This document shows positions 44,137 to 64,000 of a stretch of DNA of 64,000 bases, piece by piece. The notes under the pieces were generated by a model. That model was not told where the DNA came from, did no database searches, and saw only the letters and a program-made list of their open reading frames with translations. This stretch comes from Paraspadella gotoi. Taxonomy: Eukaryota > Animalia > Chaetognatha. The stretch spans positions 21,700,278 to 21,764,277 of the forward strand of contig CM119265.1 in the NCBI GenBank assembly GCA_051294375.1, given 5' to 3'. Every line of letters starts with the position of its first letter. Position 1 is the stretch's first letter. The translations under genes were made by a program, and so were the position numbers.

Positions 44137-47100
44137 CTAACGTTTTTCAGCTTTGTTTGTCTTCCCAATGTTCGCAGATTTCTTTCCCTTTTTCTTTTGA
44201 TCTTTCTCCGCGAATTTTCCACTCTTTTTGAGAAAATGCCGTCCGACGAAACCCAAGAACCTTCGGTTGGGCGGCATGTCTTTGCATTCCTCACGTTGCC
44301 TCGCGTATTCGGCCAGCGCGGATGCGGTCATTTTAAAGTCGCTGCGAAATTAAAAGACTTTGAACAATAGTCCTGACATCGATCTGATAAAAAGAATGTT
44401 GCAATTACCCAGCCATGGCTTTGAAGGTGAATTTTTTTCGTTTTGCAATTTCTTCGGCTCGGTGGTCGAGATCGGCTTCCATATCCGCTTTCAAGAAATT
44501 GTACGTCAATGATCTGTCCATAAATAATAAGAACAAATAATATATATGATATGAAAAATATATAGATATTTTAAAGAAAAAAATATATATACTATAACTT
44601 ATAGTATAAGTATAGTATAAGTAGGAAATATTAAATAACACAACGCAGAAGCACAGAACCAAAAACTATTTTCTCTGTTCTCATAGCATCTCCGAAAATA
44701 CGAGATTTAGAAGATAGTACCTTTTCGCGTAACTAATTTAACTTTCTAAACGTAATGTCCACGAACTGATGGACAGACAGAAAGAGAGACAGAGACCGAA
44801 AGAGAATGTGGGTTGGGTCACGATTTCGACTCCTCCCTTCACCTCAACTCGTTGACAGCCTCGTTCTCCAAATAGTAGAGCGCGACGGGCGTCTTGGCGC
44901 GCGCCTCGAACCCTTCAACCACGCGCGGCTCAAGCGCGAAGTCGACGCCGATGACGTCGTCCTCGACGCGAACGAGACGATCCACGACGACGACGTCTCG
45001 CAGACCCGCGGATCGAAGCCACTTGGTGGCGTCGGCGGAAGATTCGACGTCGTCTTTCGAGTAGCGGATGATCTCGACTTGGCCTGAACGGTCGCGTGAG
45101 TAGAGTTCGTTTGTCGATTGAGGGGAAATAGGGAGGAATGAAAAAACGTCACATAATTTGCTTTATCAAAATGATTTAACAATCAAATGAAATAAAACAT
45201 TGATAACTTTCAGCTTGTCTCATTCACAAGGATGGGTGGTCCAAAAGAAAGATTTGACCCTCCTTCAGTTTAATTAAATTATTTTTCACAGTCTCATTTT
45301 GATCACTTTTCAATAACACGAAAAATTTAAACATCTGCCTTTTAAGATGTAGTAAGTTCTATCGGCGAAGTGTCCGTGTTGGTAAATGAGGTCACCAGGT
45401 AAGAGAACTTCTTCCTTTATCTAAAAAGAATTCAAGTAATAATCGAATTAGTCTTGCTTATTAGGGAAATTGTCACCTTTCACGAGTTCATTGGAAAGGT
45501 TCAAAATTTGAATTATTTTAAAAAAATACACAATTTATAGAAAAAAGGTAAAAATAAAATAAAAAGAAAATGGTTTAATGCCTTATTATTCAGCATAAAA
45601 AATGGCATAAAATATCCTATCCCTAATGAATTGTACATCTGCAGCTGGTTTTTTCGCCGTTCCTTAACCATTAACAAGCATCGGCAAGCATCGGAAAGAA
45701 TCAACAAGCTTTCCATTCACGCCCCTTCCTTCCCAAACTGACCTTGGTTGATATCCACCTCAAGAATCCGACCTTGAGGATTCTGAGATAAGGAATCCGA
45801 TTCAAGAATCGACTCGTCAAAGCGAAGAAGACGTCGCGACGGACGCAAAGCGGAAGAAGACCGAACAGACTCTGGACCCCGAACCCGTCGTAGTAACGCG
45901 CGAGGAGGTCCCGATAGAGGGCGACGCTGGTTTGAAGCGCGGGCTCGCAACGTTGTTGAGCCAAGGCTTTGCTTTGAGGGAGGGGTCGAAGAGATATTTG
46001 GTCCTATTACTCGTAAACAGAGTGAAAAATTACGTTACTACGGTTGATTAACGTAAATCTTCAAGTTAAAAGTATGTTTTTATAGGTTTTAATGTTGCCG
46101 TTAGTTTTTTGTAAGTTTTAATGGAGCATTGAATTTGTTTTTTTCAGAAATTAAATTCCCATTTTTTAAAAAAATATTCTTTTTATTATTATCATTTTTT
46201 TCTCTCCCTTATCTTCTTTGTCAGCTATCTTATTTTTATTTCTCACATTTCACAATTCCTCACCATTGAATCGAATTAAGTTATCCCAATGAAAATTAGC
46301 GTCATCATTTAGCATCTACGCAACACTTTTTCGTCATCCATTTTCCCGCCACCTCGTCTCCCGGCTCCAGGCTTTAAGCGCCGAGCGTCGATGACCCATG
46401 AGAGCGCAATAGGAGGTGAAGACTGCCACTTCGTAGGTTAAATAAAATTTGAAGAAGAAAATGACGAAGATGGTGAAGATGATTTCGGCTTCGGTGAGCG
46501 GGGAAATATCGCCGAAACCTGGAAGATATCAGAAAGAAGGAAAACAAAACTATCGATATATTATAATGTAAGTATTATACCAATGCCACTTGGTTGATAG
46601 CGAAGGCAGGAGCACAGTAAGTTTTTAAACTGGACGGTGAAAGGGTGAGAGGCCTTTATTCACAATAGTCTGTCCAAAGTTAGAATGCCAGAAGATATTT
46701 TATTGATTAAATGAAGAGAGGTAATTTTACATTTCTTGAACCAATTTTATTCCGTTTTAGGATAAAATTTAGATGTATTTTCAAGTTATTGATATTTTTT
46801 ATAAAGACACGCTTCCATGTACCTTGTACATTGTACTTTGTACATTTTACAAGTACAATGTACAAGAAAAAAGCGAGCAAGGGTATTTTTTAATTTTTTA
46901 TGCTCATTTTTACTGTAATTGACTGAGTGAAAATTTTGGACAAACATGCCGGGATTCCATCTCTTTCGGCTTTCTTAATATTTTCTAAATTCCCTCCTGG
47001 GTCACCACCCCCTCACCCGTTGTGGTAAGCGTCTGCAACGCCCACCAAAATCCGGCCAATGTGATGTCTCCCGCGGAGTCGAACTTCTTACCAACGGCGG

Positions 47101-62100: not shown

Positions 62101-64000
62101 CCAGAGAGAGAGAGAGACAGGTCACCCGGTCACCGCTATGTGGATCCCTCCGTACATGTCCACGCCTCCTCTCACCGAATATCACTCCGAAATCTGATTG
62201 CGAGGGAAAGAAGACGTGAAGAACGAATTGAACGACGACGAAGACGACGACGACGCCGTTGAAGAAGACGACGACTTCGGGATTCGCCGGCAGAAAAGCG
62301 ACGCCCCGATGGAACCAAAGATCGTTCCACAGGAAATCGAAGACGACGGCGACGATGGCGACGACGACGAGGAGCCACGCCCACGCGGGGCGACAGCGAC
62401 GGCATCGCGCGCATTTGCGGTAATCTGAAATTGAGTTGTGCGTTAGGTTGGGAATTGAAGGTAAAGGACGAAAATGAACAGAAGGAAAAGAGAGAGAGAG
62501 AGAGAGAGAGAGAGAGAGAGAGAGAGAGAGAGAGAAAAAGGGAAAGAATTAAAAAAAATAAGATAAGAAAAAAATATTTAATGAATGAATGGATAATTTT
62601 ATATTAGTTGTGCCAATTCAATAACAGCTAGCTTTTTGTATTTTGATGTATAGTGCTAGTCAGGAGCAAGACAGATTTTTTATTAAATGAATGGATAATT
62701 GATTAATTTAATATTGGTTTTTTTTCTCACATGATTTTTGCGCCGAAACGAAGATGGAATCATCGAGTTTTTCGTCGACGAGTTCGAAGACCCCGCCTCT
62801 TCGAGTCAAAGAGGCCGCTGACACTCCAGACGCTGATGAGAGAAGATGCGTTCTCTTCAGGCGTAACCTTGAAATCGTTGTTAGCGATTTTTGTAGCAGA
62901 ATGAGTTTTGTTTAATCACAAATGGGATTGAGATCCTGATGCTTGATCCTATTCGCAAATTATAGCGCAACATAATGAAAACGATTAGAGGTAAACCAAA
63001 ACTGACCCACACAGTTTTATATCTTAATCAAACCACAGCGTCTCAAAGTCAAACGCACCTTCTCATTCTGCCGGGCTTCGCGATGAGCAGGAAATCTTGT
63101 CCACGCAATCCCCTCGCCGCCAACGCCGCCGACTCCCCGGACGCTGTCGCCCGAATTCGCTCGACGAAGCGCCTCTTCAGCCTTTGCAGCATCCCGGGAT
63201 ATTGGTCCGTCACTCTGACGAATGACTTGAGAGGGAGAGGGGAAATAGGGAGAGAGAGAAAGAGAGAAAGAGGGACAAAAAGTTCGAGAGCAGATAATTG
63301 TTTCATTCAAAGTCTCTTTCCAATGCGTCGAAGGATCGATCAAAAGAAAACAGGCAACACCTCTCGCGAGAGACACAGGAGTTCGCAGCGGGTTTTGGTT
63401 CGAATGGTGTGTACGGCGGTGAGCGGCATGAAGAGATACTTTTCTCCGAAAAAGTCTCCTGTCGTTGGTTAAAAAGTAAGTATGATTAAAAAAAAAACAA
63501 TTTCCGGCTTGTTGACCGAGCGACCTTCGTTTAGTGAGACTTCGATCCGACTAACTCCAGCCTCATCACGATTTTCAGCAACGATCATGCAGAGTGTCCC
63601 GCCGACGACGTAGACGAACCGGTCGCAGTGCCGTCCCGCCTCGGCGATCAGCTCGTCCTGGAAGAAATAAAATCTTAATGATTGAAGAAAATGAATTATC
63701 ATGCGAATTAGATAGCAAACAGAGTTACGACGAAGACGATAATGCGACTTTTTAATCTGTATGGAATTTGAATTGTCCACACATAATTTTTGCCACATAA
63801 ATTATAATTATTACTAGAAGAATGAAGATATTTATCTATAAATAAAAGAACAACGACAACACCTCACCGCGACGTAATGCGTCGTCTCCAACTCGAGCGC
63901 CAAAATCTGCAGCACCCGCGCGTCGACGTCGACCAGCGACTGGATCGACCGCAGGAGACGCAGCTGAGTCGCGTTGGCGATCCAGAGACGATAGCTCATC
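44137..64000 (-). CDS. Multi-repeat cyclic-nucleotide-binding-domain ion channel (CNGK/tetraKCNG-like architecture), 5' end outside the window
   Basis: CNBD of repeat A (63500-64000). Repeat B: S1-S2 62424-62175, pore TQSVTNVGHGGI ~57750, CNBD 57085-56500. Repeat C: S1-S2 56105-55820, pore YWASQSINFVSYGDVP 54520-54220, CNBD 53640-52760. Repeat D: S1-S4 52545-51840, pore WWALQTLTTTGFGDISP 47050-46490, CNBD LLPGDLIYQHG...YYILKG ~45400, stop at 44137. The A-B, B-C and C-D linkers splice in frame without stops. One 1-bp frameshift lies at 57014-57017. Confidence 0.85.
47365..47435. repeat. (TAA)n microsatellite
   Basis: Visible trinucleotide array, partly duplicated at 47478-47497. Confidence 0.95.
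47631..48247 (-). mobile_element. Decayed, internally deleted Tc1-family transposase in a channel intron
   Basis: HTH-like IIELHKAG...ISKQLRVNLRSVQR; KVMVFGAI; FMEDNAPPH...WP..SRDLNPIKNVW...LYESMPNRINEVVKSKG. This is the C-terminal DD34E region with the catalytic E changed to K, frameshifts, and the region of the first D deleted. TIRs were not located. Confidence 0.9.
49730..51106 (-). CDS. Candidate nested intronic three-exon ORF of unknown function (~170 aa); exons 51106-51035, 50463-50172, 49881-49730
   Basis: Three GC-richer islands join in phase at GT/AG sites without stops: MGRRCDAESAP...AQDT|VKEYLLLLGVGPFDLHP...GCPHFLQN|ASILEINFILYP...SSFKF*. The last acceptor lacks a pyrimidine tract and no domain was recognised. 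Confidence 0.35.
50644..51000. repeat. Compound (AAAG)n/(AG)n purine microsatellite
   Basis: Visible degenerate array. Confidence 0.95.
58945..62082. mobile_element. 3138-bp foldback-like non-autonomous DNA transposon with ~930-bp TIRs and 8-bp TSD (hAT-like ends)
   Basis: ttgtccac|TAGGCCTTAGCAAATTTT ... AAAATTTGCTAAGGCCTA|ttgtccac. TSD copies are at 58937-58944 and 62083-62090. Arms 58945-~59878 and ~61140-62082 are near-identical reverse complements. No transposase ORF is visible. Confidence 0.92.
60212..60253 (-). ncRNA. Minimal type I hammerhead ribozyme-like motif (Penelope type) inside the foldback element
   Basis: Minus strand reads gacg-CTGATGA-a-ggct-caaattgt-agcc-GAAA-catgtt-cgtc. 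Stem I (gacg/cgtc) and stem II (ggct/agcc) pair perfectly, stem III is the palindrome ACATGT, and AATAAA follows. Confidence 0.72.

Follow-up and report, generated by a model that had tools for sequence, protein, structure and literature searches.

The minus strand at the right-hand end of a 64,000-nt stretch of the Paraspadella gotoi genome (Chaetognatha; GenBank assembly GCA_051294375.1, contig CM119265.1, positions 21,700,278 to 21,764,277; here called the window) carries a series of ion-channel units, each joined to a domain for the binding of cyclic nucleotides (CNBD), and raises the question of whether these units are separate genes or parts of one polypeptide. The original prediction, made from the letters of the DNA, was of a single chain like that of the four-repeat CNGK channels. 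This reading is supported by the ranking of four-repeat proteins among the database matches, the order of the repeats (11 of the 11 closest relatives), a repeat-specific lysine, the low identity between units (~20%) and the lack of an ATG ahead of repeat 2. The gene is very probably a CNGK-family pseudotetramer, and the window would hold most of one single-chain, four-repeat channel gene. Judged from its sequence, it is a strongly divergent, asymmetric variant within this known family, in which the motifs of pore and nucleotide binding vary from one repeat to another and are in part degenerate.

From 63999 to 44137 on the minus strand, one open frame of 2021 codons was assembled from 32 exons, ending at a TAG stop codon (44139-44137). 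Three full units of six transmembrane segments (S1-S6), pore, C-linker and CNBD, together with a preceding CNBD, had been predicted on one strand; all are present, and the gene ends at the predicted limit of 44137. The 6.07 kb of coding sequence in the window form the 3′ part of the gene, and the frame is still open at the window edge on the 5′ side (63999). All 31 introns have GT-AG borders and range in size from 66 to 4612 nt. The GC content of the exons is 55% (69% at third codon positions, GC3), compared to 23-52% across the 31 introns, and almost all exons are low in GC at codon position 2 and high at position 3. Coding pieces were located from stop-free segments with channel motifs and by a third-position GC scan. 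Junctions were then placed at GT (or GC) donors and AG acceptors of compatible phase, between confident peptide anchors, and the three frames were also read directly. An S4-like RxxR pattern in an alternative frame at 58500-58400 was rejected, as both GC3 and the splice sites favour frame 2.

Residues 1-222 of the translated model comprise the CNBD of repeat 1 (R1) and a linker, residues 223-853 repeat 2 (R2), 854-1428 repeat 3 (R3), and 1429-2021 repeat 4 (R4) with a lysine-rich tail. R2, R3 and R4 are complete, each with S1-S6, a pore helix and filter, a C-linker and a CNBD. The linkers between units, which had been predicted to join in phase and free of stops, were all reproduced as canonical GT-AG junctions of compatible phase: MR(R)-LRLK at 63059/62867, AQKS-YYRKC at 62731/62424, KKAVK-RSPLS at 56183/56105 and DDIFK-TPSS at 52774/52541. 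At the third of these, a donor of the same quality is found 6 nt further upstream (56189), and its use would give KKA-RSPLS; 57243/57237 is a second pair of alternative donors. The inter-repeat introns are short, being 191 and 306 nt between R1 and R2, 83 nt between R2 and R3, and 232 nt between R3 and R4. The linker exon between R1 and R2 (62867-62731) is required, because with a direct 63059/62424 junction S1 of R2 is out of frame. The exons that separate the R1 CNBD from S1 of R2 (the linker exon, and the S1 exon upstream of S1) have no ATG, so repeat 2 cannot initiate translation by itself. The first half of the linker exon shows a better GC3 pattern in another frame, with the switch at a GGGG run (~62795); the cause may be an assembly error of one base, or just noise in a linker under little constraint. 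The parts of the gene are as follows (PBC, phosphate-binding cassette of the CNBD).

63059-63999, minus strand: repeat 1, CNBD only; exons 63999-63868, 63657-63525, 63458-63361 and 63225-63059; the frame leaves the window at 63999.
63453-63400, minus strand: R1 PBC, FFGEKYLFMPLTAVHTIR, with Ala in the phosphate-binding Arg column.
62731-62867, minus strand: R1-R2 linker exon, LRLKRTHLL...VSAQKS, 137 nt, carrying the frame from the R1 CNBD to S1 of R2; no ATG.
56189-62424, minus strand: repeat 2, from the junctions and the model.
R2 exons, transmembrane part, minus strand: S1-S2, 62424-62176; S3-S5, 58678-58477; acidic turret, 58260-58006; pore-S6, 57875-57657.
R2 exons, cytosolic part, minus strand: C-linker, 57575-57482 and 57410-57237; CNBD, 57093-56928; CNBD end and poly-Asp linker, 56721-56189.
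57769-57743, minus strand: R2 filter, SVTNVGHGG.
56689-56636, minus strand: R2 PBC, FCGNFGHQRRNVFRLNVV.
52774-56105, minus strand: repeat 3, from the junctions and the model.
R3 exons, transmembrane part, minus strand: S1-S2, 56105-55824; S3-S5, 55346-55076; turret, 54967-54738; pore helix, 54600-54470; filter-S6, 54240-54045.
R3 exons, cytosolic part, minus strand: C-linker, 53823-53734; CNBD, 53654-53508, 53434-53357, 53283-53138 and 52927-52774.
54486-54231, minus strand: R3 filter, SINFV-SYGD, interrupted by a phase-2 intron.
55235-55188, minus strand: R3 S4 with the repeat-3-type LNRLL motif, from the S4 alignment.
53247-53194, minus strand: R3 PBC, VFGAGGLLKLSVWWSSLR, with Trp in the Arg column.
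44137-52541, minus strand: repeat 4 and C-terminus, from the junctions and from Pfam and PDB matches.
R4 exons, transmembrane part, minus strand: S1, 52541-52335; S2-S4, 52169-51836; S5-pore helix, 47223-47017; filter-S6, 46518-46353.
R4 exons, cytosolic part and tail, minus strand: C-linker, 45971-45743; CNBD, 45420-45333, 45083-44843 and 44513-44409; tail, 44341-44137 (TAG).
47032-46508, minus strand: R4 filter, TLTTT-GFGD, interrupted by a phase-1 intron.
46459-46442, minus strand: R4 S6 lysine, in FFFKFY.
44955-44896, minus strand: R4 PBC-like stretch, VIGVDFALEPRVVEGFEARA.

The Ion_trans and cNMP_binding repeats that a hidden Markov model (HMM) search was expected to reveal were found in part. 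The Pfam cNMP_binding model matched all four units, with 47.5, 25.2, 23.8 and 17.0 bits from R1 to R4, and the first alone passes the cut-off of 27.5 bits. Ion_trans matched R4 (51.9 bits) and, weakly, R3 (19.1 bits) but not R2; Ion_trans_2 was also found in R4 (31.4 bits). With a jackhmmer family profile built from relatives, the pore-to-CNBD cores of R2 and R3 scored 96.6 and 105.3 bits, and the R1 CNBD 55.6 bits. No PAS/eag domain was detected by Pfam in any unit. The mutual identity of the units points to an ancient internal repeat rather than a recent tandem gene array.

An exhaustive HMMER search of 1.84 billion proteins, using a 387-aa concatenate of repeat 4 as query, matched 2587 proteins, and the top of the list consists of proteins of 1900-2400 aa with four to five matched stretches each. 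In a word-indexed protein search, a repeat-4 concatenate matched one protein (P0001) and the full 2021-aa model matched nothing, probably because the candidate list was saturated by low-complexity words. The four-repeat matches include a Sinocyclocheilus 'cyclic nucleotide-gated potassium channel' (a fish CNGK), an Amia protein, and Branchiostoma floridae LOC118411052, the cluster of which contains XP_002592427, a model adjoining BfCNGK (XP_002592428). The latter is the amphioxus CNGK used by Fechner et al. (PMC4749565). Others are uncharacterised proteins of the crinoid Anneissia japonica, the nemertean Tubulanus polymorphus and Bombyx mori/mandarina. The Bombyx cluster has six members, including four named B. 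mori / B. mandarina proteins, and its two full-length proteins differ at 5 of 2172 positions. The best match, P0002, is encoded without introns on a metagenome contig, presumably of protist origin, and protists (e.g., Cantina and Platysulcus) are the source of some four- and two-repeat matches. Uncharacterised four-repeat relatives therefore exist in protostomes (Bombyx, Tubulanus), and none of the papers mentioning CNGK in the literature searched describes an insect member of the family. The lineage that had been suggested to be uncharacterised is thus not entirely new to databases.

If the units are repeats of a CNGK chain, they should match the repeats of known chains in order. Each window unit was aligned (Smith-Waterman) with each repeat of 26 four-repeat proteins, and the scores were summed over the four cyclic registers. 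Register 0 (R1 CNBD to repeat 1, and units 2, 3 and 4 to repeats 2, 3 and 4) was best in 14 of the 26 proteins, and in all 11 closest relatives, among them the fish CNGK and the amphioxus CNGK locus, with margins of 46-165 raw score units. In these 11 relatives, 29 of the 44 best repeats for a given unit were diagonal ones, where 11 are expected by chance; the R1 CNBD matched repeat 1 best in seven, and R3 matched repeat 3 best in nine. As a control, five relatives were used as queries, and register 0 was best in 10 of 10 comparisons for each of them. Their diagonal counts were 26-31 of 40 (Bombyx, Branchiostoma, Tubulanus and the fish protein) and 16 of 40 (the protist protein P0002). The window gene scores like these control members, and so behaves as a member of the family.

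Two repeat-specific features were also retained. One column of S6 carries Lys or Arg in R4 of 10 of 14 relatives, in none of their 42 R1-R3 units, and in one of 62 single-unit channels; the window gene has Lys at this place in its last unit (R4) and not in units 2 and 3. This diagnostic was derived in the present analysis and is not a published one. The other is the repeat-3-type LNRLL motif in S4, kept by R3. Register, lysine and LNRLL motif together identify the first visible CNBD as that of repeat 1 and place the missing part upstream, and we infer exactly four repeats, with S1-S6 of repeat 1 lying beyond base 64000. That a repeat extends outside the window had been predicted correctly; the register test points to repeat 1, located upstream of 64000, and the gene has its end inside the window.

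The three visible selectivity filters are SVTNVGHGG (R2), SINFVSYGD (R3) and TLTTTGFGD (R4), and the canonical GYG/GFG is found in R4 alone. As GHGG and SYGD both deviate from G-Y/F-G, the channel is probably less strictly selective for K+, or altered in its conduction. Serine in place of the first Gly of GYG is the weaver change of GIRK2, which abolishes K+ selectivity, and its presence in R3 makes relaxed selectivity plausible. Family-specific residues, such as the pore-helix YW motifs and the GD following the filter, are retained. The S4 segments of R2 and R3 are charge-poor, and acidic low-complexity inserts are present as a poly-Glu turret in R2 and a poly-Asp run in the R2-R3 linker. Introns in R3 (54470/54240) and R4 (47017/46518) split the same filter codon, that of the first residue of the G-Y/F-G triplet, in phases 2 and 1, respectively. 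This filter-codon intron is absent from R2, and no intron lies nearby in the genes of Bombyx, Tubulanus or Branchiostoma.

The nucleotide-binding motifs are similarly altered. By both MAFFT and HMM-based alignment, the phosphate-binding Arg is replaced in its column by Ala (R1), Phe (R2) and Trp (R3). In R4 the column holds Glu by MAFFT only, the HMM having left this stretch unaligned. The Glu of FGE is kept only in R1, with Ala at that place in R3, and the full FGE...PR[ST]A cassette occurs in none of the four CNBDs. Since the aligned Arg is lost in all four CNBDs and the FGE Glu in three, gating is probably independent of canonical cyclic GMP (cGMP) or cyclic AMP (cAMP) binding. DrCNGK of zebrafish is reportedly insensitive to cyclic nucleotides and controlled by pH. 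Relatives of the window gene usually retain the PBC Arg in two to four repeats, the exception being Bombyx, where it is lost in all four. Ala takes the place of the Arg in repeat 2 of zebrafish CNGK, and in the sea-urchin channel ApCNGK the third CNBD alone mediates gating, one cGMP at this site being enough and the other CNBDs non-functional (PMC4749565). The loss of Arg in the window gene includes this third repeat, which argues against canonical cGMP gating.

A very different explanation of the locus would be three or four separate tandem genes for single-subunit CNBD channels of KCNH, HCN or CNG type, forming ordinary tetramers, with the linker exons as chance open frames. Several observations favour it or weigh in other ways against a CNGK chain. 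Among solved structures, the best matches of R4 are KCNH5 (64 bits) and KCNH1, followed by plant SKOR/AKT1, and its best single-domain score (99 bits) is with P0022, a 708-aa single-unit protein, compared to 81.5 bits for the best CNGK-type repeat. The similarity to KCNH5 is no higher than that of R4 to plant and bacterial CNBD channels, and HCN matches are weaker (at most 45 bits). Because R4 scores as well against single-unit channels, raw similarity cannot decide the assignment, which is based instead on architecture, on register and on the repeat-specific residue. Identity to any relative is low (25-28%; 25-29% over the matched stretches of the top proteins in the exhaustive search), and the transmembrane region of R2 is unrecognised by Pfam, with no Ion_trans match. 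Distance placement of single cores is saturated, all distances being 1.7-2.4, and the positional signal is weak even among known four-repeat proteins; for this reason the register test and its control were used in its place. No intron shares its exact position and phase with the Bombyx, Tubulanus or Branchiostoma genes, which suggests heavy intron turnover in this lineage. As to the gene model itself, an open frame was partly a criterion in choosing junctions, in-frame Met codons occur near the CNBD ends of R2 and R3, and the R1-R2 linker exon has no clear coding signature, its codon-position GC signal being the weakest of all exons. Nevertheless, tandem genes are hard to reconcile with the lack of an ATG between the R1 CNBD and S1 of R2, or with inter-unit introns of only 83-306 nt and matching phase, which leave no room for a terminator and promoter. 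The units, in spite of their divergence, correspond in order to repeats 1-4 of single-chain proteins, the last has the lysine specific to repeat 4, and none has a PAS/eag domain by Pfam. Separate genes are thus extremely improbable.

If the units do form one CNGK chain, its odd filters and Arg losses may reflect relaxed constraint in a decaying, non-functional relic and not a new function. Decay would account for the two non-canonical filters among the three visible, the degenerate state of the PBC in every one of the four CNBDs, charge-poor S4 segments in R2 and R3, the long acidic inserts, and the sub-threshold Pfam scores of three CNBDs and two transmembrane domains. It is very unlikely, however, in a gene of 2021 codons and 32 exons that has no stop or frameshift, only canonical splice sites and a strong GC3 bias in nearly every exon, and that retains the R4 lysine, the R3 LNRLL motif, the pore-helix YW and the post-filter GD. 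The Bombyx relative is comparably degenerate, and its two full-length proteins are nearly identical. Conversely, the gene may be functionally ordinary, encoding a cGMP-gated, K+-selective sperm channel in which one intact site or compensating residues are enough, just as ApCNGK opens on one cGMP at a single CNBD (PMC4749565). The filter of R4 is a perfect TTTGFGD, and the pore of R1 is outside the window and may be canonical. Arg residues lie within one or two positions of the canonical column (R2, +1; R4, -2); with these some binding may persist, and they might substitute for the phosphate-binding Arg. But in the third CNBD, which is the functional one of the sea-urchin channel, Trp occupies the Arg column and Ala replaces the FGE Glu, the complete cassette is missing from every CNBD, and R3 carries the weaver-type Ser, so that an ordinary CNGK is unlikely.

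By analogy with the family, the single CNGK-type chain would fold as a channel of 24 transmembrane segments, with a single central pore lined by four different pore loops (P-loops) and a cytosolic ring of four CNBD-type domains below it. These domains would more likely serve as a structural or regulatory gating ring than as canonical ligand sensors, resembling those of KCNH channels and also of zebrafish CNGK, which is reportedly under pH control. The CNBD-homology domains of KCNH do not bind cyclic nucleotides, and act as a gating ring. Rather tentatively, the gene, perhaps together with Bombyx-type relatives, may represent a CNGK-derived lineage that lacks both defining functions, having four non-equivalent P-loops and a CNBD ring that no longer binds ligand. 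If true, this would be an independent case, on the potassium-channel side, of the symmetry-breaking found in Nav, Cav and NALCN, with a permeation that is not K+-selective or is otherwise novel. CNGKs have been described as pseudo-symmetric; here the repeats are ~20% identical, their filters differ, and the CNBDs lack the ligand-contacting Arg. If expressed and functional, the gene would be a natural experiment on the evolution of asymmetry in concatenated channels, and on the fate of CNBD rings after ligand binding is lost.

Two of the introns are large and contain repeated sequences.

47224-51835, minus strand: 4.6-kb intron in repeat 4, with a Tc1/mariner-type remnant and low-complexity repeats.
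58679-62175, minus strand: 3.5-kb AT-rich intron (24% GC) in repeat 2, with a large inverted repeat inside.

The remnant in the first is a decayed Tc1/mariner-type transposase at ~47631-48160 (minus strand), with DDE-like frames split by stops (e.g., DNAPPHRAKETKEWHRRNGVKLLPDWP) and a Pfam DDE_3 score of 19.5 bits, below the cut-off. The inverted repeat in the second has arms of ~1 kb (~58933-59906 and 61110-62094), which are 91-100% complementary in eight collinear blocks and lie ~1.2 kb apart; it looks like a foldback element or a transposable element with long terminal inverted repeats. Introns of the channel gene also hold long microsatellites of the (GA)n/(CT)n type and further tracts of low complexity, at 53010-53105, 62490-62545, 47350-47420 and 50620-51120.

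The remainder of the window carries two neighbouring genes of the TEP/alpha-2-macroglobulin (A2M) family on the plus strand, at 15775-19445 and ~26900-34420, as had been predicted (A2M_BRD, 75 bits; TED domain, 135, 66 and 69 bits). The thioester site is the canonical GCGEQ in the first and NCEHQ in the second, and their best database relatives are vertebrate A2M-like proteins of 28-33% identity. An AA15 gene had also been proposed, but in the 38-42 kb part searched for it, the open reading frames (ORFs) 39248-39775 and 40631-41203 (plus strand) gave no Pfam match at E<=0.01. Near the left end of the window, both on the plus strand, are a fragment of a PARP catalytic domain (637-1281, 34.8 bits) and, at 3958-4497, a sulfate permease exon of SLC26 type (69.3 bits). 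A run of Ns, representing an assembly gap, is present at ~10100-10540, with runs of X in the ORF translations. Rfam and tRNA scans of the window gave no matches.

The single chain of four six-segment units with four different P-loops, and thus an asymmetric filter, resembles Nav, Cav and NALCN; those channels have no CNBDs, and no sequence relationship to the window gene beyond the voltage-gated-like fold. HCN and CNG channels are single-unit proteins with an intact PBC Arg and a CIGYG (HCN) or TIGE (CNG) pore, whereas the window gene is concatenated and lacks the aligned Arg. KCNH channels (EAG/ERG/ELK) provide the best solved-structure match of R4 and the most likely working analogy for the CNBDs, but are single six-segment tetramerising subunits with an N-terminal PAS/eag domain, which Pfam did not find in the concatenated window units. 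The Bombyx protein (B. mori LOC101747086 / B. mandarina LOC114241301, 2172 aa) has four repeats in perfect per-unit register (1, 2, 3, 4) with the window gene, and shares with it odd filters (NALGD in R1, GTGD in R4), loss of the PBC Arg in four CNBDs, and the S6 lysine in R4. Its degenerate filters, however, are in R1 and R4 instead of R2 and R3, it is no closer to the window gene than deuterostome CNGKs are, and the two have no exact intron position and phase in common.

The nearest counterparts are the CNGKs of sea-urchin sperm (ApCNGK, Bonigk et al. 2009) and zebrafish sperm (DrCNGK, Fechner et al. 2015, PMC4749565), which have the same single chain of four units, each of S1-S6, pore, C-linker and CNBD. 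Likeness extends to the in-order match of the repeats, the S6 lysine and GFGD filter of R4, and the loss of the binding Arg in individual CNBDs, as in zebrafish repeat 2. The window gene differs in its low identity to them (25-28%), in the filters of R2 (GHGG) and R3 (SYGD), where described CNGKs have GYG or GFG in every repeat (PMC4749565), in lacking the aligned Arg in all four CNBDs, repeat 3 included, and in its long acidic inserts (R2 turret and R2-R3 linker). CNGKs have been described as lacking domain specialisation, their four domains being almost identical (PMC6259924), and it is against this description that the asymmetry of the Paraspadella gene is notable.

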